This document shows positions 7,658-53,690 of a DNA stretch of 64,000 bases, piece after piece. The translations under genes and the position numbers were made by a program. The stretch is from positions 1 through 64,000 of the IMG/VR virus record IMGVR_UViG_3300007735_000804; one strand, written 5' to 3'. Every line of letters starts with the position of its first letter. Position 1 is the first letter of the stretch. A model generated the notes under the pieces. That model was given only the letters and a program-made list of their open reading frames with translations. It ran no database searches and was not told the origin of the DNA.

Positions 7658-8086
7658 TTATTGGTGCTTTTGTAGGTATTTAATCATTTCTTCTAGAAGA
7701 TTTACATTATCACCTACTTGACCCAATACCATATTACAGTTCCTACAAAGCAACTGACGAACTTTACCTGTCTTATGATCGTGGTCTACACAAAGTTTTT
7801 TCCATTTACCATCACCTTCACCTTTACAAATAGCACAAACTCCTTTTTGCTCATCAAACATTTCTTGGTGTTCTTGAAGAGTTATACCATAGTTTCTTTT
7901 CAAGTCATTATTTCTTGTGCGTTCTGGATTATCTTGATGTCTTTTTTTAACTCTTTCTTTATCACATTCTTTACAAGATGAGTGACGAACCATAGTAGTT
8001 TTATTTCTTACATAAAAATCCGTAGCAAGTTTTTCTTTACCACAAGATATACAAGTTCTATAAAGTTCGGAGTATAGTTTAGTCAT
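7658..8086 (-). CDS. Endonuclease VII-like free-standing homing endonuclease (F-CphI-like)
   Basis: CAICK...LCVDHDHKTGKVRQLLCRNCN; directly downstream of intron-bearing psbA, as F-CphI is in S-PM2. Confidence 0.85.
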   Translation of the reverse strand: MTKLYSELYRTCISCGKEKLATDFYVRNKTTMVRHSSCKECDKERVKKRHQDNPERTRNNDLKRNYGITLQEHQEMFDEQKGVCAICKGEGDGKWKKLCVDHDHKTGKVRQLLCRNCNMVLGQVGDNVNLLEEMIKYLQKHQ

Positions 8087-8109
8087 TCGTGTTTTCTTTC
8101 GTGCATAAT

Positions 8110-8117
8110 TATTTATA
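8110..8117 (-). promoter_or_regulatory. T4-type late promoter TATAAATA
   Basis: Exact consensus upstream of the endonuclease; also exact at 33109-33116, 42959-42966 and 49254-49261. Confidence 0.75.
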
Positions 8118-8143
8118 AAAAAAGGAACTCCGAAGAGTTCCTT
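8118..8143 (-). terminator. psbA intrinsic terminator
   Basis: AAGGAACTC-TTCG-GAGTTCCTT followed by a T run. Confidence 0.8.
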
Positions 8144-8152
8144 AACATTATA

Positions 8153-9439
8153 TCACCCGATGGATGGTGCAGTCAAGGCAACCGAAGTTGTTTGAGCAGC
8201 AGCAAGGTCAAGTGGGAAGTTGTGAGCATTCCTTCTGTTTTAACCTCTGTCGCCAGAGGGAGCGGACTATATCATCACTTATAAGAGTGTCGGACGCTAG
8301 TGGCGTATTACGGATGAAGCGTCATCCACCGCCTAGTCTCTGAACCTTCCTTACACGCTTGCAAGGCTTGGATGCTGATTGTCTACAAGAGAGTTCCAGC
8401 AATTCATCCGATTTAACGAGCGCCATGCAGACACAAAACGCTCATGCATTACCTCAATCCCTAAATTAGCAGAATTCAATACATCTGCCCAAGTTTTAAT
8501 AACACGGTTTTGACTATCAGTAATGCTTTGAACAAAGTTAAATCCATTGAGATTATAACTCATAGTAGCAATACCTAAAGAAGTAAACCAAATTCCAACT
8601 ACAGGAAGTGCTGCTAGGAAAAAGTGCAGTGAACGGGAATTATTAAATGATGCGTATTGAAAAATCAATCGACCGAAATACCCGTGAGCAGCAACAATAT
8701 TATAGGTTTCCTCTTCTTGACCAAACTTGTATCCATAGTTTTGTGATTCAGATTCAGTCGTTTCACGAATGAGTGAAGAAGTAACCAAAGAACCGTGCAT
8801 TGCTCCAGCAAATGCACCACCAAAAACACCTGCAACTCCCATCATATGAAAAGGATGCATAAGGATATTGTGTTCTGCTTGGAATACAAGCATAAAGTTA
8901 AAAGTTCCAGAAATACCGAGAGGCATACCATCACTAAAACTTCCTTGTCCAATTGGATAGAGAAGAAATACCGCAGTTGCAGCAATAGCAGGAGCAGAAT
9001 AAGCAACAAAAATCCAAGGACGCATACCAAGACGATAAGAGAGTTCCCACTCTCGCATAGCATACATCCAAATACCAATCAGGAAGTGAAAAACAATTAG
9101 TTGATATTCACCACCATTATATGCCCATTCTTCTAAGGATTGTGCTTCCCAGATTGGGTAAAAGTGCAGTCCAATTGCATTGGACGAAGGAACAACAGCA
9201 CCAGAAATGATGTTGTTTCCCCACATAAGAGAACCAGCAACGGGTTCCCTAATACCGTCAATGTCTGTTGGGGGTGCTGCAATAAAAGCAAGAATAAAGC
9301 AAGCAGTAGCAGCAATAAGACACGGAATCATAATAGTTCCCGACCACCCCACATAAAGTCGGTTGTCGGTAGAAGTAACCCACTGGCAAAAAGATTCCCA
9401 AGGGTTAGTAGAATTGCGTTGTGCAATAGAAGCAGTCAT
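8153..9439 (-). CDS. psbA: Photosystem II D1 protein, 359 aa; exon 1 9439-8438, exon 2 8230-8153
   Basis: MTASIAQR...EVMHER joined to [25 protein letters not shown]; Y161, D170, E189, H190, H198, H215, H272, H332, E333, D342 and A344 are present. Confidence 0.97.
8231..8437 (-). mobile_element. Group I self-splicing intron (207 nt) in psbA after codon 334
   Basis: Exon ends in U and intron ends in G; P1 GAGCGU/GCGCUC; core elements AATTGCTGGAA (P), AATCAGCA (Q), GTTCAGAGACTA (R), ATATAGTCC (S). Confidence 0.95.
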
Positions 9440-9562
9440 TTTCGTTAAAGGGTAAGTAAAAGTCCAGGGGGAACTGGATAGTACGTTATTCCCCACAGCA
9501 CCCTCCACTGTGGGCATGAGAGACGTTTTTATACTCCCCATAGGTCTCGGTTAGTGGGAGTC
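9440..9562 (-). ncRNA. Structured psbA 5' UTR, PhotoRC-II-like motif
   Basis: Hairpin CCCACAG-TGGAGGGTG-CTGTGGG, plus ACTCCC/GGGAGT and GAGAC/GTCTC pairings; family assignment from recall. Confidence 0.6.
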
Positions 9563-9609
9563 ACAGTGTTGCGAAATGTTTTAATTTCGTAACATTTGTT
9601 TACCTATTT

Positions 9610-9638
9610 ATCATACTACTGTTTCCCGTCCGTGTCAA
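9610..9638 (-). promoter_or_regulatory. Sigma70-type psbA promoter
   Basis: TTGACA-17 bp-TATGAT, overlapping an ATAAATA late-like element. Confidence 0.7.
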
Positions 9639-9799
9639 GCCCCGTATTCTTCCAGTTTGTCCAGGACTTTGTTGAGATACTGGTGTGCCAACCATTTTGG
9701 ATCATATCCAGATTTATTCATCCACTCCTTATCCAAATCTCTTTTAATTTTGAGGATCTCACATTTTATGATGTCCTTTGTCAATTGTCCTCTTGGCAT
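9635..9799 (-). CDS. 54-aa hypothetical cyanophage protein (not in ORF track)
   Basis: MPRGQLTKDIIKCEILKIKRDLDKEW...HQYLNKVLDKLEEYGA. Confidence 0.65.
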   Translation of the reverse strand: MPRGQLTKDIIKCEILKIKRDLDKEWMNKSGYDPKWLAHQYLNKVLDKLEEYGA

Positions 9800-9858
9800 A
9801 TACAAAAAAAAACTCTGCCCCTTATTTAGAGCAGAGTTTATTATTATGTAGAATTATT

Positions 9859-9966
9859 TCACCAAACACCGGGAATAATTTGTCCAGTCAGGGCATAAGA
9901 TCCCATTGCGGCAACGATTCCGATCATTGCGAACCAACCATTAATGCGTTCTGCACGTTCGTTCAT
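9859..9966 (-). CDS. hli: High-light-inducible protein, 35 aa (not in ORF track)
   Basis: MNERAERINGWFAMIGIVAAMGSYALTGQIIPGVW; AExxNG and TGQIIPG motifs. Confidence 0.92.
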   Translation of the reverse strand: MNERAERINGWFAMIGIVAAMGSYALTGQIIPGVW

Positions 9967-9978
9967 TGTTTTTCTCCT

Positions 9979-10164
9979 TTATTTTACATTAGAATAGATT
10001 GAAGTTTCACCATAATCACGGTGAATTTTATAACCAACAACTGCACCCTTCGTGTTCATCAGGGCAGGCATAAAAACAATTGTGAAGAACACTGCTGGTG
10101 CTCCAATAAAGAGAGCAGCAACGATCACATAATAAGTCAGAATTTCAATTAGAGAGTGTTCCAT
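9979..10164 (-). CDS. Small single-TM membrane protein
   Basis: Probable start MEHSLIEIL; long hydrophobic segment. Confidence 0.6.
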   Translation of the reverse strand: MEHSLIEILTYYVIVAALFIGAPAVFFTIVFMPALMNTKGAVVGYKIHRDYGETSIYSNVK

Positions 10165-10423: not shown

Positions 10424-10509
10424 CAGTATGTTTCTGAAAGTTGCTCAATAGCATAACCCAAAATTACGAAAAATGCAATAGTGGTTACTGTCCAGAGTGC
10501 TTCAGTCAT
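10423..10509 (-). CDS. 28-aa single-TM peptide (not in ORF track)
   Basis: MTEALWTVTTIAFFVILGYAIEQLSETY; TGATG overlaps at both ends. Confidence 0.55.
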   Translation of the reverse strand: MTEALWTVTTIAFFVILGYAIEQLSETY

Positions 10510-10718
10510 CAGAAGATTCCGAAGAAGAGTTTGCCAGTGAGAGCATAAGAAACAGCACCAGCAACAATGCCGACCATCGCCCAGCGTCCATTCATTTTCT
10601 CCGCTTTTTCTGCATAAGGTTCAAACCCATAACGCTCAATATCTTCTTTAGACATCCACATCGTAGGTTCTTTGGCAAACATATTCATTTGCCCGCGATC
10701 ATTAGTTGTTACAGTCAT
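10509..10718 (-). CDS. hli: High-light-inducible protein, long HliA/B-like type
   Basis: AEKMNGRWAMVG motif; N-terminal RGQMNMFAKEP; start placed after the promoter at 10746-10774. Confidence 0.92.
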   Translation of the reverse strand: MTVTTNDRGQMNMFAKEPTMWMSKEDIERYGFEPYAEKAEKMNGRWAMVGIVAGAVSYALTGKLFFGIF

Positions 10719-10745
10719 TGTACATTCGTTAAGAATTGTTACACA

Positions 10746-10783
10746 ATTATATAGTAAAAATAAAGGGGCGTCAAGCCCCTTTT
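10746..10783 (-). promoter_or_regulatory. Sigma70 promoter with its -35 inside a terminator hairpin
   Basis: AAAGGGGC-TTGAC-GCCCCTTT; TTGACG-17-TATAAT. Confidence 0.75.
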
Positions 10784-10813
10784 GTTCGGATATCGTAACT
10801 TGAGTACAAATAC

Positions 10814-11596
10814 TCATCCACCAGGATTGCTAATACGATTTAAATAGGGATCATAGGTCATTAAATCAGAAATTTGCATATCACATCCTTGAGTTTGCCA
10901 AAAATTAATCAGTGCATCATGACTTCCTTTATGATAAATATCAATATGCTCTGGATGAATAGCAGAACCCAAATCGAGACGATATAAGAATAAAGGAATT
11001 GAATATGTTTTACCAGATCCAAAAATAGTATCTTCTGAAACTGCCCTAGGTTTTACACCATTATCAAGTTTGAATTTATTACCGCGAATATGATTCTTGA
11101 TAATCTTTGCTGCGTGGTGACGTGTAATCAGATAAGCTGCCGCAGAGAAATCATTAATAAAATAATGGTGTAAGCGAACATGAATATTACCAGTACAAAT
11201 CGTAGTTAACTGCACACAGTCCCAATCATGAGGTAACTTTGATACAAAATCCTTCCAAGTAAAGTTCCAATATCTGGTAGGTTCTAAAGCAATGTCATCT
11301 TCAAAAATAAGAATATATTCGGCATCAGTATTCTCATAAAAATATTTAATTGCTTTCAAATGGGACATGCAGCATCCAATTTCATTTTGAGACATGTTAT
11401 CAGGAGCACGTCCAATTAAGAACTCACATACATCATCAGTTCTTCCATCAAAACCAGAAATTCTTAAATGATTTTCAATTCCCCAATAAGTAAATTGATC
11501 CTCCATATACTGACGACGATGATCATCAGCATCAAGATTCAACCATAAAATTTGTGGTAAACCATTTAATTTGTATAATGACTTATTTATGTCCAC
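10814..11596 (-). CDS. Glycosyltransferase family 25
   Basis: INL...RR, EIGCCMSHLKA and ILIFEDD motifs. Confidence 0.85.
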   Translation of the reverse strand: MDINKSLYKLNGLPQILWLNLDADDHRRQYMEDQFTYWGIENHLRISGFDGRTDDVCEFLIGRAPDNMSQNEIGCCMSHLKAIKYFYENTDAEYILIFEDDIALEPTRYWNFTWKDFVSKLPHDWDCVQLTTICTGNIHVRLHHYFINDFSAAAYLITRHHAAKIIKNHIRGNKFKLDNGVKPRAVSEDTIFGSGKTYSIPLFLYRLDLGSAIHPEHIDIYHKGSHDALINFWQTQGCDMQISDLMTYDPYLNRISNPGG

Positions 11597-29588: not shown

Positions 29589-29653
29589 ATGAGTATTGTT
29601 TTTTTTATAATTATACTAAAAAAGATGGGTTTATGCAACCCACCTTCATGTAC

Positions 29654-30057
29654 TCAGGCTCGCCACCAATTCTTTGACTGGAAATTGGAAACCAGGCGGG
29701 AGAGAGTCCCATCCGCACCACTTGCTTTTTAATGGAAAAGCAAGAAACCATAAGGGGTCAGATTGACTCCACCACTTGGTTTTAGGAAACCAAGAAAAGT
29801 TGGGTTAACTTTGATAGTTCGGTAATACCAAAGAATGCTATCAGAAATAGCACGTCCCAGAGTTTAAGTTTGATAGCAAAAGGAATACCAAAGAGTCCTC
29901 CGATAAACTTAATTGCTAGACCAAACTTAAAGTTTCCCCACAACATAACTTGATAACCAAGCATTAGGAGAAAGTTTCCAAGATACCTCAAGATACTTGA
30001 TTTAGACATAAGGGGTTTGCTCCCGACCAGGGCTTAGTTTTGAGTCATAACCGAGAC
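29654..30057 (-). ncRNA. manA-like structured RNA, interrupted by a 75-codon ORF
   Basis: 5' part GTCTCGGTTATGAC...CCCTGGTCGGGA; three TTTC-hairpin-TGGYG units at 29661-29797; upstream of sugar genes; family assignment from recall. Confidence 0.6.
29782..30009 (-). CDS. Small multi-TM membrane protein
   Basis: 75 aa with three hydrophobic segments; stop codon lies in the loop of an RNA hairpin. Confidence 0.65.
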   Translation of the reverse strand: MSKSSILRYLGNFLLMLGYQVMLWGNFKFGLAIKFIGGLFGIPFAIKLKLWDVLFLIAFFGITELSKLTQLFLVS

Positions 30058-30577: not shown

Positions 30578-30651
30578 TCGGGCATAGAGGATTTGAACCT
30601 CTGGCCTTTCCGCCCCAAACGGAACGCGCTACCAAACTGCGCTAATGCCCG
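30578..30651 (-). tRNA. tRNA-Pro(UGG)
   Basis: Cloverleaf; TTCCG-TT TGG GG-CGGAA; GGTTCAAATCC. Confidence 0.93.
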
Positions 30652-30691
30652 TTGCGTTGAGTGGTCTTGCCTCCCAACAGAAGTAATTATA

Positions 30692-30844
30692 CTACTTCTT
30701 GTGCCCCCTGTCAAACGGAGCCCAGTGCTGCCATCCGTATTTATGAATTGCCCAGATACCCATAATAGGCAGAACAATCAAAAGATATCCAATAATACCA
30801 AGAGTATAAGGATTTTCTAATACCCATCTTGCAAAGTGTCCCAT
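30692..30844 (-). CDS. 50-aa single-TM protein (not in ORF track)
   Basis: MGHFARWVLENPYTLGIIGYLLIVLPIMGIWAIHKYGWQHWAPFDRGHKK; TAATG coupling. Confidence 0.65.
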   Translation of the reverse strand: MGHFARWVLENPYTLGIIGYLLIVLPIMGIWAIHKYGWQHWAPFDRGHKK

Positions 30845-31065
30845 TAATATCCCCTCCAAGTCTTAAATTCGTAGTAAAAATATTGGTCAAGAATTTTATC
30901 ATCTAATGGAGCATTCTCTTCCCTATGTGCCCACTCAACACAGAAATCTACAATCTTATGGTCGTGTAATGAACTATGTCCCCACATTCTTACGAATGCA
31001 GTTGCAGCAAAGTGATATCGTTGCCTAATGTGCGGTTCCGTTTCCCTTATAATCTTTGGAGTCAT
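30844..31065 (-). CDS. Hypothetical cyanophage protein
   Basis: 73 aa ending YFYYEFKTWRGY. Confidence 0.6.
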   Translation of the reverse strand: MTPKIIRETEPHIRQRYHFAATAFVRMWGHSSLHDHKIVDFCVEWAHREENAPLDDKILDQYFYYEFKTWRGY

Positions 31066-31147
31066 AGTATCCTCCTTTTGTTCCGAAATAGAGTGTTGTT
31101 AAAACAAACGGGACTGAAACAAATAAAAGTGCTTTTGCGAGTAACAT
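31025..31147 (-). CDS. ndhP: NDH-1L small subunit NdhP homologue, 40 aa (not in ORF track)
   Basis: MLLAKALLFVSVPFVLTTLYFGTKGGYYDSKDYKGNGTAH matches the NdhP TM plus FGTxNGFYDxDxYHGNGSAH signature. Confidence 0.85.
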   Translation of the reverse strand: MLLAKALLFVSVPFVLTTLYFGTKGGYYDSKDYKGNGTAH

Positions 31148-31314
31148 TATGAAAATACTCCTGGAACATAATCAATTCTTTCACGAAGTTCATCTAGAAG
31201 GACGCCATACTCCTTGAACCTTCTATCACCAGCAATGAAACATCTTTGTCTCATCCATACTGCATCTGCGATTAATTTTAGTTCGTAATCTGAAAAATCT
31301 TTAAAGCGTTCCAT
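31147..31314 (-). CDS. 55-aa micro-protein, paralogue of 7384..7545
   Basis: Core ADAVWMRQRCFIAGDRRFKEYG. Confidence 0.75.
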   Translation of the reverse strand: MERFKDFSDYELKLIADAVWMRQRCFIAGDRRFKEYGVLLDELRERIDYVPGVFS

Positions 31315-31321
31315 ATTTCTC

Positions 31322-31417
31322 CTAGTGGGGTGGATATGCATGATTGAGTCCCCATACAATGAAGCACCCTATCGCACCAAAAATAGTTAATGCCTTGAAC
31401 AATAGATTAGTATTCAT
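31322..31417 (-). CDS. 31-aa single-TM peptide resembling the NdhQ C-terminus
   Basis: MNTNLLFKALTIFGAIGCFIVWGLNHAYPPH versus recalled NdhQ ...ILGFIAGLIWWALHTAY. Confidence 0.45.
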   Translation of the reverse strand: MNTNLLFKALTIFGAIGCFIVWGLNHAYPPH

Positions 31418-31511
31418 TATCCTCATCCTCGTAAGTAGATGGTTCTTCTATCTTTTGCTGTAAAACTCTTTGTTGTAGTTCTTGAATATCTTCGTCCGTA
31501 ATAGATATCAT
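31407..31511 (-). CDS. 34-aa acidic micro-protein
   Basis: MISITDEDIQELQQRVLQQKIEEPSTYEDEDNEY; ATGA coupling. Confidence 0.5.
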   Translation of the reverse strand: MISITDEDIQELQQRVLQQKIEEPSTYEDEDNEY

Positions 31512-31687
31512 TTGTCCTTGAGTAGTTCTTCTATTCTTTGACGCATATTTATGCTGTCCTGTTTCATATAGTCCCGAAGAGAATATCCCTTCTGACCTCT
31601 CATAATACAGGTGCCTTGATAGAACATCGTGGCTGCAAATACTAACAGGAGAACGATACCAATTATTTCAGGGTAATGTTGAGCCAT
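31508..31687 (-). CDS. 59-aa single-TM protein
   Basis: MAQHYPEIIGIVLLLVFAATMFYQG...RIEELLKDK. Confidence 0.6.
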   Translation of the reverse strand: MAQHYPEIIGIVLLLVFAATMFYQGTCIMRGQKGYSLRDYMKQDSINMRQRIEELLKDK

Positions 31688-31869
31688 GGTAGTACTGGTG
31701 GAATAACTCCGATAAGTCTTAACAATCCTTCAGCAAATAGAGCAAGAACCACCCAACCAACACACATAGAAATAATGGAAGCATTCCGATTGTGTTGTCG
31801 TATAGCAGCATCAATCATCTCCTGGACTTCAGAACGAGATACATAATCGTCATCAAACGGTTCCATCAT
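31663..31869 (-). CDS. Small membrane protein
   Basis: HNRNASIISMCVGWVVLALFAEGLLRL. Confidence 0.65.
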   Translation of the reverse strand: MMEPFDDDYVSRSEVQEMIDAAIRQHNRNASIISMCVGWVVLALFAEGLLRLIGVIPPVLPWLNITLK

Positions 31870-32015
31870 TTCTCATCTCCAAGAAACTTTGCAAGAGGAT
31901 CCTTGCGAGTTTTAACTATTTCAACTGCTCTCTTGTAGAACATATTATCCATGTTCCCAGAGGCTTCAAAAGTCTCCTTGATCTTCACCCAGTTCTCATA
32001 GGTGTGCTGATCCAT
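31866..32015 (-). CDS. 49-aa hypothetical protein, first gene after an early promoter
   Basis: MDQHTYENWVKIKETFEASGNMDNMFYKRAVEIVK... Confidence 0.65.
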   Translation of the reverse strand: MDQHTYENWVKIKETFEASGNMDNMFYKRAVEIVKTRKDPLAKFLGDEK

Positions 32016-32131
32016 AGGTTTAAAGTTTGAATACTACTAGTTATGCTAGTGAGTAATTCTACTATGTCAAGTTTGTGTTGATATAAAAATATACATTAAG
32101 ACAATCTTAAAATTGTAATATTTTTTTTAAA

Positions 32132-32215
32132 CGGAAAGGGTGGGATTCGAACCCACGGTGCTATTAACACGACAGTTTTCAAGACTGTTTCCTTAAACCA
32201 CTCGGACACCTTTCC
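32132..32215 (-). tRNA. tRNA-Ser(UGA)
   Basis: ACAGT-CT TGA AA-ACTGT; long variable arm. Confidence 0.93.
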
Positions 32216-32222
32216 ATATAAA

Positions 32223-32294
32223 TGGGAAATGCTAGATTTGAACTAGCGACCTCTGCGTTATCAGCACATTGCTCTACCGCTGAGCTAATCTCCC
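32223..32294 (-). tRNA. tRNA-Ile(GAU)
   Basis: TGTG-CT GAT AA-CGCA; cloverleaf. Confidence 0.9.
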
Positions 32295-32297
32295 ATA

Positions 32298-32389
32298 CGG
32301 AGGATGTTGGATTTGAACCAACGGATGCACTTAAAGTACATCGGGGGATTAGCAATCCCCTGCATTAAACCTAACTCTGCCAATCCTCC
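32298..32389 (-). tRNA. tRNA-Ser(GCU)
   Basis: GGGGA-TT GCT AA-TCCCC; long variable arm. Confidence 0.92.
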
Positions 32390-32646
32390 TATCGGATTTC
32401 AAAGTCTAGGCGTTTTACTTTACGCTGACGCCTTGCTTCCTGAAAAGCAAGATCTTCGTTTGAAAGAACACCAGACTTTGATTTTGTATGATAGGAGTTT
32501 AGCATAACGACAGATGATAAGTCAACTGCAGAGATCTTATCACCACGAATAGTTGACATATTGGGACAACCACACGTCACAGTTTTAGTAGGATGCCCCT
32601 CTAACTCCTTACCACAGGAGCGGCATCTGATTCTTAAATTATCCAT
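32389..32646 (-). CDS. Cys-rich (Zn-binding) hypothetical protein
   Basis: CRSCG...CGCPN. Confidence 0.7.
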   Translation of the reverse strand: MDNLRIRCRSCGKELEGHPTKTVTCGCPNMSTIRGDKISAVDLSSVVMLNSYHTKSKSGVLSNEDLAFQEARRQRKVKRLDFEIR

Positions 32647-32652
32647 TTTATA

Positions 32653-33090
32653 CTATTTTTCAGTAAATGAACGCAACATCCAAATGTATTTTCCGTGTGC
32701 TTCGTTTAGATCATCAAGAAGATTAATCGTTCCTCTTGACTTTTGCTCTTCCGCTTCAACAGCAGCAGCATCAAACATAGCAACTATTTTTTTATGATCC
32801 TCAAGAAGATCACGAATCATTTCCATTGAAGAAATGTTAGTCTTTGCTTCAGAAACCCCAGAAACTTCCAATACTCGTGAAAGAGAACTGATAGGTTTAA
32901 TACCTAAGAATCTCATATGTTCTGATAATCTATCAATCTCTTCCTGAATAGTAAGATATTGCTCCCCAAACAAATCATGAATCTGTTTAAAGTCTTCCCC
33001 TACAACATGCCAATGATAAACCCAAGTTTTCTGAAAGAGTAAAAAGAGCGATGCTTGCGTATCACTCAGAAGTTTATATAGAGATTCCAT
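32653..33090 (-). CDS. dps: Dps / ferritin-like DNA-protection protein
   Basis: YHWHVVG, IHDLF, IDRLSE, KYIWML. Confidence 0.9.
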   Translation of the reverse strand: MESLYKLLSDTQASLFLLFQKTWVYHWHVVGEDFKQIHDLFGEQYLTIQEEIDRLSEHMRFLGIKPISSLSRVLEVSGVSEAKTNISSMEMIRDLLEDHKKIVAMFDAAAVEAEEQKSRGTINLLDDLNEAHGKYIWMLRSFTEK

Positions 33091-33120
33091 TATACTTCTT
33101 TTTGAAAGTATTTATAAAAG

Positions 33121-33193
33121 TGCCCGATATAGGTTCCGCCCCTACCGATGCCTGCTTGTAAGGCAGGTCCCTTCACTAGCTGGGTCATCGGGC
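33121..33193 (-). tRNA. tRNA-Val(UAC) with atypical T-loop
   Basis: CCTGC-CT TAC AA-GCAGG; acceptor stem GCCCGAT/ATCGGGC; T-loop GGCGGAA. Confidence 0.75.
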
Positions 33194-33533
33194 AAAAAAT
33201 TAAAGTTTTTCCATCATATATTCTACAGTATTTGCTACATCATTCATAGCGTTCCGTAAATTTTCTCTTTGACCCGACTCTTGCCTTACGACTGGGCGAT
33301 GGTCGTCTGTAAGAGTCCAACGCCATTGATTCATATCCTTACAAAACCAGAGATTAATTTTCATTCTTGAAATACTCTAGTTCGATCCATTTGAGAAGAG
33401 TATTGTATGAATAGATTGCTGCTTCATTGCAATTATTCTTTTTCATATCTTGAATATAAAATTCAAGAGCATCAATAACCATCTCACGATCTTTTTGGGA
33501 AATAAGAGACATAAACCTCCTAACTCGTTATCT

Positions 33534-33568
33534 ATAATACATTAAAAAGGGGGTCTTGTCAACCCCCC
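33534..33568 (-). promoter_or_regulatory. Early promoter within a terminator hairpin
   Basis: GGGGGT-TGACAAG-ACCCCC-TTTTT; TTGACA-17-TATTAT. Confidence 0.7.
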
Positions 33569-33591
33569 ATTCTATATTATGTAGTTAGGTA

Positions 33592-33963
33592 TCAGAAGGA
33601 ATAACGCACCTTCAGTTCACCGCCCATATCAAACACTTTGGACAGTCCACCATATTCACCAGTCACTTTGGCATTCACACCAACATTCTTGGAAACTTTG
33701 GATTTCACACCAACTTCACCAACGGTCACATACTCATTACGGGTAGAACCAGTATTCCACTCATAACCAGGACCGATCTCACCAAAAACAACAACGTTCT
33801 TGGCAACTTTATCTTCATAACCGATACGCAGTTCGGTTTGTGCGGACTTATAGTTGCCGTCAGAAAGAGCAGTAGTGGTCTTGCTTTCTACATAAGGGCC
33901 AGCAAATGCAGCCGAAGCAAGGAAAGGAGTTGCAGCAACAGCTGCGATTGCGGATTTAAACAT
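33592..33963 (-). CDS. Small outer-membrane beta-barrel protein
   Basis: Signal peptide MFKSAIAAVAA...AFA, alternating beta-strands, C-terminal RYSF. Confidence 0.75.
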   Translation of the reverse strand: MFKSAIAAVAATPFLASAAFAGPYVESKTTTALSDGNYKSAQTELRIGYEDKVAKNVVVFGEIGPGYEWNTGSTRNEYVTVGEVGVKSKVSKNVGVNAKVTGEYGGLSKVFDMGGELKVRYSF

Positions 33964-34105
33964 AATAGTACCTCTATATTTTCTCGCAGAGTTTCCTGCG
34001 GATGTAAGGAGTTTCGACAAACTCCCTTTAGTTCAGTGACTCAACAAGTATTTGAGGTTTCATCACTTGATTTATTTAGATATTAACGGGAATTCGGTTT
34101 CCCGA

Positions 34106-34177
34106 AGCGGAGTATCGGATTCGAACCGACGACGAACTGCTTGGAAGGCAGTCATTCTACCACTGAATTAACTCCGC
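34106..34177 (-). tRNA. tRNA-Gly(UCC)
   Basis: ACTGC-CT TCC AA-GCAGT. Confidence 0.93.
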
Positions 34178-34223
34178 AAAGTGGGGGATTTCTCCCCCAA
34201 CACACTTCCTTCACACAAAAGAA

Positions 34224-34252
34224 AGTATAAGACATAATATGAATTATGTCAA
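34224..34252 (-). promoter_or_regulatory. Sigma70 promoter with a palindromic spacer
   Basis: TTGACA-17-TATACT; GACATAAT-N4-ATTATGTC inverted repeat. Confidence 0.75.
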
Positions 34253-34253
34253 G

Positions 34254-34326
34254 AGCCCCCGCTCGGAATCGAACCGAGAATCTTCCGCTTACAAGGCGGA
34301 TGCAGTAACCGTTATGCTACAAGGGC
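34254..34326 (-). tRNA. tRNA-Thr(UGU)
   Basis: TCCGC-CT TGT AA-GCGGA. Confidence 0.93.
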
Positions 34327-34330
34327 AAAT

Positions 34331-34538
34331 GGGTAACGAGTGCCCGTCACCCGCAGAAGACACTTTCTGCAATTTTCACTGCATTAGAGGGCAGTGAATA
34401 AAAACATTTCCAGTAGCCGCTCTTATCTCCCATAAGGAAGATGTAGGCATCGAACCTACAAAGGACAGTCCCGAAGAACTGCTGGGAATTCCACCCAGAA
34501 TGTAGTTTAGAAGAATCAGACATTTCCAATCCCTCTAA
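34331..34538 (-). ncRNA. Unidentified highly structured RNA between tRNA-Asn and tRNA-Thr
   Basis: Seven hairpins plus a possible TTAGAGG/CCTCTAA pseudoknot. Confidence 0.6.
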
Positions 34539-34610
34539 CTCCCCAACCTCGATTCGAACGAGGGACAGCAAAATTAACAGTTTTGAGTTCTACCACTGAA
34601 CTATTGGGGA
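34539..34610 (-). tRNA. tRNA-Asn(GUU)
   Basis: CAAAA-CT GTT AA-TTTTG. Confidence 0.92.
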
Positions 34611-34635
34611 ATGGTTTGGAGCATTATACTCCAAG

Positions 34636-34708
34636 CAGGGCAGGAGGGATTTGAACCCCCATCTTACATCTTAGAAGGATGGTGCATGATCCGTCATGCT
34701 GCTGCCCC
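34636..34708 (-). tRNA. tRNA-Arg(UCU)
   Basis: CATC-CT TCT AA-GATG; GGTTCAAATCC. Confidence 0.9.
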
Positions 34709-53531: not shown

Positions 53532-53613
53532 TGCCCAAAAGAGGACTTGAACCTCCACAGATATTTCTACAGGAACCTAAACCCTGCGCGTCTACCAATT
53601 CCGCCATTTGGGC
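53532..53613 (-). tRNA. tRNA-Leu(UAG)
   Basis: CAGGG-TT TAG GT-TCCTG; variable arm. Confidence 0.92.
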
Positions 53614-53616
53614 AAG

Positions 53617-53690
53617 TGGAGAATATCGGACTCGAACCGATGACTTCATCCTTGCAAAGGATGCGCTACTACCAACTGAGCTAATTCCCC
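53617..53690 (-). tRNA. tRNA-Ala(UGC)
   Basis: CATCC-TT TGC AA-GGATG; G3:U70 pair. Confidence 0.92.

Follow-up and report, generated by a model that had tools for sequence, protein, structure and literature searches.

Few known proteins are as conserved as D1, and for this reason natural variation at its invariant sites is both rare and informative. The psbA gene of an IMG/VR virus record (IMGVR_UViG_3300007735_000804; 213,274 bases, estimated complete) raises the question of whether a phage D1 that departs from the canonical sequence at normally fixed positions is still a functional protein of the standard type, and what its substitutions might change. We analyzed positions 1 to 64,000 of that record, a 64,000-nucleotide stretch referred to here as the window, to which all coordinates apply. 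An original prediction, made from the letters alone, had interpreted the gene as a member of a phage D1 clade with retuned acceptor-side kinetics or turnover. Our analysis indicates that the gene, which is split by an intron, probably encodes a functional phage D1 of the standard type, from a divergent lineage found in freshwater, with helix surfaces repacked under strong purifying selection.

The minus-strand frame 9439..8438 is stop-free over 334 residues. Its product aligns without gaps to residues 1-334 of solved D1 chains (E ~3e-192) and matches Pfam PF00124 (Photo_RC) with 289 bits. Past H332-E333-R334, the unspliced frame enters unrelated intron sequence and gives a product without H337, D342 and A344. 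The D1 frame is taken up again at 8230, reading N335-A-H337-N-F-P-L-D342-L-A344 and then 15 residues and a TGA stop codon, and exact excision of the intervening group I intron (Table 1) puts the frame back in register. The interval 8438-9439 is exon 1 only, exactly, and the spliced gene would encode a complete D1 of 359 residues. Database proteins of the same clade that measure 341-343 residues are unspliced read-throughs, truncated where gene callers ran into the intron. Throughout the analysis, exons 1 and 2 were handled separately, each with its own reference, and were never joined for a search, a fold or a tree. A longer mechanical open reading frame (ORF; 9541..8351, 396 amino acids) was rejected as the gene: on the upstream side, its in-frame extension coincides in part with the PhotoRC-II leader RNA, such that the ATG at 9541 lies inside that motif, and its downstream part is not D1.

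The residues on which D1 function depends are retained. Exon 1 keeps H118, Y126, E130, Y161, H190, H198, H215, H252, F255, S264 and H272. The original prediction had placed all ligands of the oxygen-evolving complex within 8438-9439, and this stands for D170, E189, H332 and E333, together with Y161 and H190, whereas H337 and the remaining Mn4CaO5 ligands, D342 and the A344 carboxyl terminus, belong to exon 2. The full set of Mn ligands depends on the predicted splicing of the intron, because these last three residues are encoded beyond it. With all Mn-cluster ligands kept, an atypical or "rogue" D1, including the chlorophyll f synthase type, was rejected, in agreement with what had been predicted. 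The microaerobic D1', which is marked by G80A, F158L and T286A, was rejected as well, given the presence of G80, F158 and T286. Glu at position 130 denotes the high-light type, and the window D1 carries it as described, but Glu is also what most rows have at this position (273 of 317). By fold, family, cofactors and Mn ligands, the protein has the attributes of a standard water-oxidising D1 and would be expected to assemble into photosystem II and to support O2 evolution. The 15-residue C-terminal extension after A344 is predicted to be removed.

To place the substitutions, the exon 1 product was compared with 79 other IMG/VR phage D1s, 80 GTDB cyanobacterial D1s (the best 80 of 593 GTDB matches) and ~115 metagenome proteins. 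A cellular consensus covering residues 14-334 was taken from 111 cyanobacterial D1s, 31 of them picocyanobacterial copies. The window D1 differs from this consensus at 47 of 321 columns; the corresponding figure for phage D1s is a median of 27, versus 13-16 for cellular D1s. Of the 242 columns that are ≥99% invariant in the 111 cellular D1s, 17 are changed in the window D1, compared with 0-2 in cellular D1s and 0-15 (median 4) in 81 other viral D1s. These consensus counts replaced root-to-tip length as the measure of divergence, which was dropped when the midpoint root fell among viral sequences.

All of the substitutions listed beforehand are present in exon 1, and codons 209-212 occupy 8815..8804 as had been stated. 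Their description as changes at near-invariant sites is correct for most: F33S, V58T, L106A, G128M, L210F, F211A, S212G, W278L, F295Y, N303V and R323S are each found in 0-2 of the 79 other viral D1s and in none of the 80 GTDB D1s listed, and P111E is found in 2 of the 79. The description fails for C144F (42/79), S209A (19/79) and M127A (9/79). C144, S209 and M127 are not near-invariant sites, and among phages both C144F and S209A are commonplace. That is to say, the concern that the substitutions might be common in picocyanobacterial or phage D1 applies to C144F and S209A among phages, whereas most of the others are rare. The protein is genuinely divergent, and its changes cluster where D1 is normally fixed.

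No close cellular counterpart was recovered. The closest isolate D1s are those of phages S-CBWM1 and S-CREM1, at 84-85% identity. No cellular D1 exceeded ~85% in 401 genomes of the picocyanobacterial family (best 84-85%), and none exceeded 84% among the best 80 of the 593 GTDB matches. The coding pattern F-A-G-A-M-H-G, which includes the motif at 210-212, was found in 0 of 401 sampled cyanobacterial genomes, and all 111 cellular rows carry the canonical residues. Recent capture from a picocyanobacterial host was rejected on the basis of these identities and the missing motif in the genomes sampled.

Phylogenetic analysis places the window D1 in a 31-tip group with a support of 92 (FastTree, 317 rows), and the group consists only of metagenome and IMG/VR sequences. 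In a second tree (IQ-TREE, 88 rows), a 23-row core has a Shimodaira-Hasegawa-like approximate likelihood ratio (SH-aLRT) value of 95, and the core joined to a 13-row viral sister group has a value of 90. Both trees were built without S-SRM01 and S-CBWM1, whose exon-1 region is split; these two were compared site by site, using their individual matches. Inspection of the 28 distinct clade rows reveals W124 in all 28 and M128 in 24, versus 0 of 286 rows outside the clade for M128. A291 and S294 are each present in 26 of the 28, L160 in 23 and Y295 in 22. The sub-lineage of the window has in addition F-A-G at 210-212, L278, I152 and V303, and close relatives of the window carry G323. At the signature sites, the isolates S-SRM01, S-CBWM1, S-CREM1, S-CRM01 and S-PM2 have the canonical residues. 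The phage D1 clade that had been proposed is thus supported by the trees and by its phage contexts, and no isolate compared has its signature. The clade is known only from metagenomes and IMG/VR, and all contexts examined are phage-like. Contigs for five clade sub-lineages all carry phage genes and the synteny of the window, namely glycosyltransferase 25, a small ORF, psbA, the endonuclease and Metallophos, along with lysozyme, speD, thyX and glutaredoxin.

Within this clade, the unusual D1 sequence is strongly maintained by purifying selection, with ratios of nonsynonymous to synonymous substitution rates (dN/dS) of 0.03-0.07. Pairwise dN/dS is 0.027 between the window and locus L002, a 99.4% relative in IMG/VR (dS 0.26, two residue differences), 0.046 between the window and locus L162, and 0.067 between the window and locus L164. 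Independent contigs yielded the same D1 at 96-99% identity, and a protein word search returned two 96%-identity clusters (73 and 60 members) and several at 85-89%. Near-identical DNA is present in freshwater, lake, estuary, sediment and groundwater metagenomes from at least nine studies. Three freshwater RNA libraries hold fragments with 0-3 differences, which are compatible with expression and do not prove it. The literature searched contained no account of a freshwater phage D1 clade that carries these residues, which is no proof of absence; as far as that literature shows, the protein variant is new, and the kind of element is known.

Table 1. Positions of psbA, its RNA elements, the adjoining endonuclease gene and the main groups of D1 substitutions in the window.
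Feature	Coordinates	Strand	Description
psbA, whole gene	9439..8153	-	Exon 1, 207-nucleotide intron and exon 2
psbA exon 1	8438..9439	-	D1 residues 1-334; start ATG at 9439
psbA exon 2	8153..8230	-	D1 residues 335-359 and TGA (8155..8153); H337, D342, A344 and C-terminal extension
Group I intron, 207 nucleotides	8231..8437	-	Rfam RF00028, 74.4 bits (cut-off 50)
PhotoRC-II RNA motif in psbA 5' leader	9478..9571	-	Rfam RF01717, 70.8 bits (cut-off 39)
Endonuclease VII-type gene, free-standing, 142 amino acids	7658..8086	-	F-CphI homologue, directly downstream of psbA
Helix B, codons 124-128	9056..9070	-	F124W, C125M, M127A, G128M; flank conserved Y126 and E130
Helix D, codons 200-212	8804..8842	-	L200M, S209A, L210F, F211A, S212G; just before H215, ligand of iron and QB
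Codon 278	8606..8608	-	W278L; co-occurs with F211 loss in every sequence examined
Codons 291-323	8471..8569	-	S291A, A294S, F295Y, N303V, G311N, R323S; lumenal end of helix E and C-terminal domain

Inspection of where the changes fall indicates three regions of D1 (Table 1). The helix B changes surround Y126 and E130, which hydrogen-bond pheophytin D1. Those on the lumenal side are near the N298 network, the channel exit and the PsbV contact. Neighboring exchanges of bulky and small residues at 127/128, 151/152, 210/211 and 291/294 suggest that the helix surfaces may have been repacked in a compensated manner. On the acceptor side, F211 is among the residues that attract the tail of the quinone QB (PMC4030317), and W278 and L200 surround the tail of the lipid sulfoquinovosyldiacylglycerol (SQDG) and form the "QD" quinone-analogue site near channel I, ~15 angstroms from QB (PMC10300377). 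In Chlamydomonas, resistance to several herbicide classes increases when Ala, Gly, Thr or Ile takes the place of F211, and a P162S/F211S strain exhibits 8-fold atrazine resistance together with a reduced efficiency of transfer from the quinone QA to QB (PMC3629139). For R323, PMC9732884, citing Zhu et al. 2022, describes a location at the exit of a water and proton channel and Thermosynechococcus mutants with lowered activity and loss of PsbV. Positions 211 and 278 vary together, with F-A-G at 210-212 accompanied by L278 in 16 of 16 rows and L-I-S accompanied by L or V at 278 in 11 of 11. A retuned acceptor side is plausible and backed by this literature, and would be limited to the niche formed by the QB tail and the quinone channel.

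The mechanism we favor combines these elements. The S-PM2-type group I intron would self-splice to yield a complete 359-residue D1 of the E130 type. During infection, this protein would take the place of host D1 in photosystem II, beside host D2, as has been suggested for other phage D1s. No psbD was found in the 213,274-base record, which contains a single Photo_RC gene, and the freshwater isolates S-SRM01 and S-CRM01 likewise have one match each in the tblastn table. A phage without psbD must therefore place its D1 beside host D2. In the clade, helix B, helices D and E (the QB tail, the SQDG "QD" pocket and quinone channel I) and the lumenal end would have been repacked at positions that are fixed in cells. 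The repacked QB-tail niche may change plastoquinone exchange and inhibitor affinity, and loss of R323 may change the lumenal exit or the binding of PsbV.

Several points weigh against this reading, and in particular against its functional part. Residues 215-275, which comprise the QB head-group region and the D-E loop, are canonical save for V224I and T230S, and any acceptor-side effect would for that reason be indirect. Unusual changes are as numerous near pheophytin D1 and on the lumenal side as on the acceptor side, which speaks against a retuned acceptor side; the acceptor-side interpretation offered originally passes over an equally marked lumenal cluster, and the altered turnover offered with it finds nothing in the D-E loop to support it. 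The co-variation of 211 and 278 is consistent in direction, but it amounts to no more than 2-3 independent events and lacks statistical significance. A single sample supplied two phage contigs (L203:4114-5193 and L204:7001-8266) that encode a D1 that is otherwise canonical and lies outside the clade, yet has F-A-G with L278. Nucleotide identity rises only modestly at codons 196-240. The shared residues may represent convergence or a recombination patch, and part of the co-variation may be recombinational. The structural placement of the changes derives from papers and general knowledge of D1 helices, and the cyanobacterial genome sets are samples rather than exhaustive collections. Finally, no spliced exon 1-exon 2 junction was seen in the RNA-library contigs, although contigs cannot exclude one. 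One RNA run has a 388-nucleotide skip with a 30-nucleotide side at 90% likeness, which is probably from another organism.

Compensated drift offers another account of the same substitutions. A fast-evolving phage lineage would have accumulated paired exchanges of bulky and small residues that keep packing intact and have no measurable phenotype. The adjacent swaps fit this account, as does the generally greater deviation of phage D1s from the cellular consensus, with the catalytic residues unchanged. However, F211 replacement by itself alters herbicide affinity and QA-to-QB efficiency (PMC3629139), and mutations of R323 alter activity and PsbV retention (PMC9732884). Complete neutrality is unlikely because laboratory mutations of F211 and R323 have effects, and the new states are themselves under strong purifying selection. 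We consider drift without phenotype possible, if somewhat unlikely. A bolder version of the functional reading is that this widespread freshwater phage clade installs in host photosystem II a D1 in which both the quinone-tail and channel niche (without F211 and W278) and the lumenal exit and PsbV contact (without R323) have been rebuilt, giving different quinone exchange during infection and lower sensitivity to QB-site inhibitors such as triazine and urea herbicides. We regard that version as unlikely.

Alternatively, the substitutions might copy, or be co-adapted to, the photosystem II of an unsampled host, including its D1, D2, CP43, PsbV and lipids. Phage psbA genes are host-derived, a phage D1 must fit host partners when no psbD is carried, and the genome scans sample cyanobacterial diversity, all of which would accommodate such matching. 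In contrast, neither the 401 picocyanobacterial genomes nor the best 80 of the 593 GTDB matches hold a D1 above ~85%, the 210-212 motif is absent from 401 sampled cyanobacteria, and the 111 cellular rows are canonical without exception. The clade contexts examined are all phage, and the nearest genome, that of the freshwater Synechococcus phage S-SRM01, has a canonical D1. Host matching is in our judgment quite improbable as the source of the signature. A gene that is chimeric, decaying or without function, or an artefact of assembly, to which the unspliced frame without D342 and A344 and the mosaic 3' end described below might point, was rejected as extremely improbable, given a bona fide group I intron that restores the frame exactly, the low dN/dS, the near-identical recoveries on independent contigs across studies, and the retention of every cofactor residue.

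The intron of the window psbA separates codon R334 from codon N335; U at 8438 is the final base of the 5' exon, and G at 8231 is that of the intron. The intron is ~97% identical to that of S-SRM01 at the same site and ~70% identical to that of S-PM2. The adjoining endonuclease has 81% identity to F-CphI of S-PM2 over all 142 residues and matches Pfam Endonuclease_7 with 93 bits. In S-PM2, the intron shields its own psbA from the free-standing endonuclease F-CphI, an arrangement termed "collaborative homing" (PMC6083498). The architecture of intron plus F-CphI is already known, from S-PM2. Both the codon 334/335 site and the adjacent F-CphI-type gene assign the window psbA to this class, for which self-splicing of the intron and cleavage of intron-less psbA by the endonuclease would be predicted.

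The intron site was examined in loci L002, L162, L164, L197, L198, L203 and L204, and its position varies. The intron is missing from L002, L164 and L203. It follows codon 334 in the window, S-PM2, S-SRM01 and L204, codon 336 in L162, and codon 337 in S-CBWM1. The window gene has a mosaic 3' end. Identity to L002 is 68 of 72 nucleotides over codons 299-322 but only 23 of 36 over codons 323-334 (8438-8473), and a donor for these last 12 codons of exon 1 was not apparent, with no close match among the loci compared (best 29/36). Exon 2 is identical to that of S-SRM01 over 78/78 nucleotides. Such a mosaic fits, and suggests, that exchange or co-conversion took place near the site of the intron. 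The mosaic tract includes R323S.

The source of the window is an uncultivated ~213-kb freshwater T4-like cyanomyovirus related to S-SRM01. This freshwater Synechococcus myovirus is the nearest sequenced genome, with 80-82% nucleotide identity in psbA and in the block of nrd and primase-helicase genes. The G+C content of the psbA region (window 8001-10000) is 0.405, versus 0.34-0.36 in its neighbors. Upstream of psbA, a small ORF (10509-10817, minus strand) ends in the motif N-G-R-W-A-M-V-G, which by eye resembles high-light-inducible proteins; it has no Pfam match at E 0.001, and its counterpart in related contigs has only a faint Psb34 mark. Elsewhere in the window, a wcaG RNA motif is present at 29652-29752 on the minus strand (101.9 bits versus a cut-off of 42), and two transfer RNA clusters lie at 30578-34708 (eight Rfam matches) and 53532-53690 (two), on the minus strand only.

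These findings bear on how far D1 can vary. The clade reveals which helix-surface residues, next to pheophytin D1, along the QB tail and quinone channel, and at the lumenal exit, can be replaced together under strong selection. It also supplies natural variants for the study of quinone exchange, inhibitor binding and PsbV docking, namely F211A/I with W278L/V, G128M, and R323S/G. Abundant freshwater cyanomyophages carry a D1 lineage that is found in no sampled host. Were the quinone niche indeed rebuilt, the D1 of this clade would be a natural parallel, carried by phages, to the herbicide-resistant D1 mutants known from the laboratory.

Comparison with known systems separates the familiar parts of this locus from the unfamiliar. 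The psbA of S-PM2 shares the intron between codons 334 and 335, a homologous intron RNA and a 142-amino acid F-CphI directly downstream, but S-PM2 is a marine phage, and its D1 is canonical at every signature site with 83% identity in exon 1. S-SRM01, from Serangoon Reservoir, has the codon-334 intron, the identical exon 2 and an endonuclease VII gene downstream, and likewise gives no psbD match. In contrast to the window psbA, that of S-SRM01 is interrupted at least twice more, after approximately codons 90 and 250, with a homing endonuclease in one of these interruptions (PMC8557907), and its D1 is canonical at all signature sites, with 81% identity. The estuarine Synechococcus phages S-CBWM1 and S-CREM1 have the most similar isolate D1s. 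S-CBWM1 has a small group I intron near its 3' end and has Q100 and E103 in common with the window D1; its 3' intron, however, follows codon 337, and both phages are canonical at 33, 58, 106, 124-128, 210-212, 278, 291-295, 303 and 323.

With solved cyanobacterial D1 (Synechocystis D1:2, 6wj6_A and 8am5_A), the window D1 shares a gap-free alignment over residues 1-334, the cofactor and Mn residues, and E130, and differs by ~50 substitutions, 17 of them at columns that are invariant in cellular D1. Laboratory Phe211 mutants (Chlamydomonas P162S/F211S, Synechocystis 6714 AzI/AzV and Synechococcus 7002) likewise lack the Phe211 side chain (PMC3629139). These are selected or engineered single or double mutants, whereas in the phage clade F211A, or F211I in sister lineages, is natural and conserved, and is accompanied by L210F, S212G and W278L.

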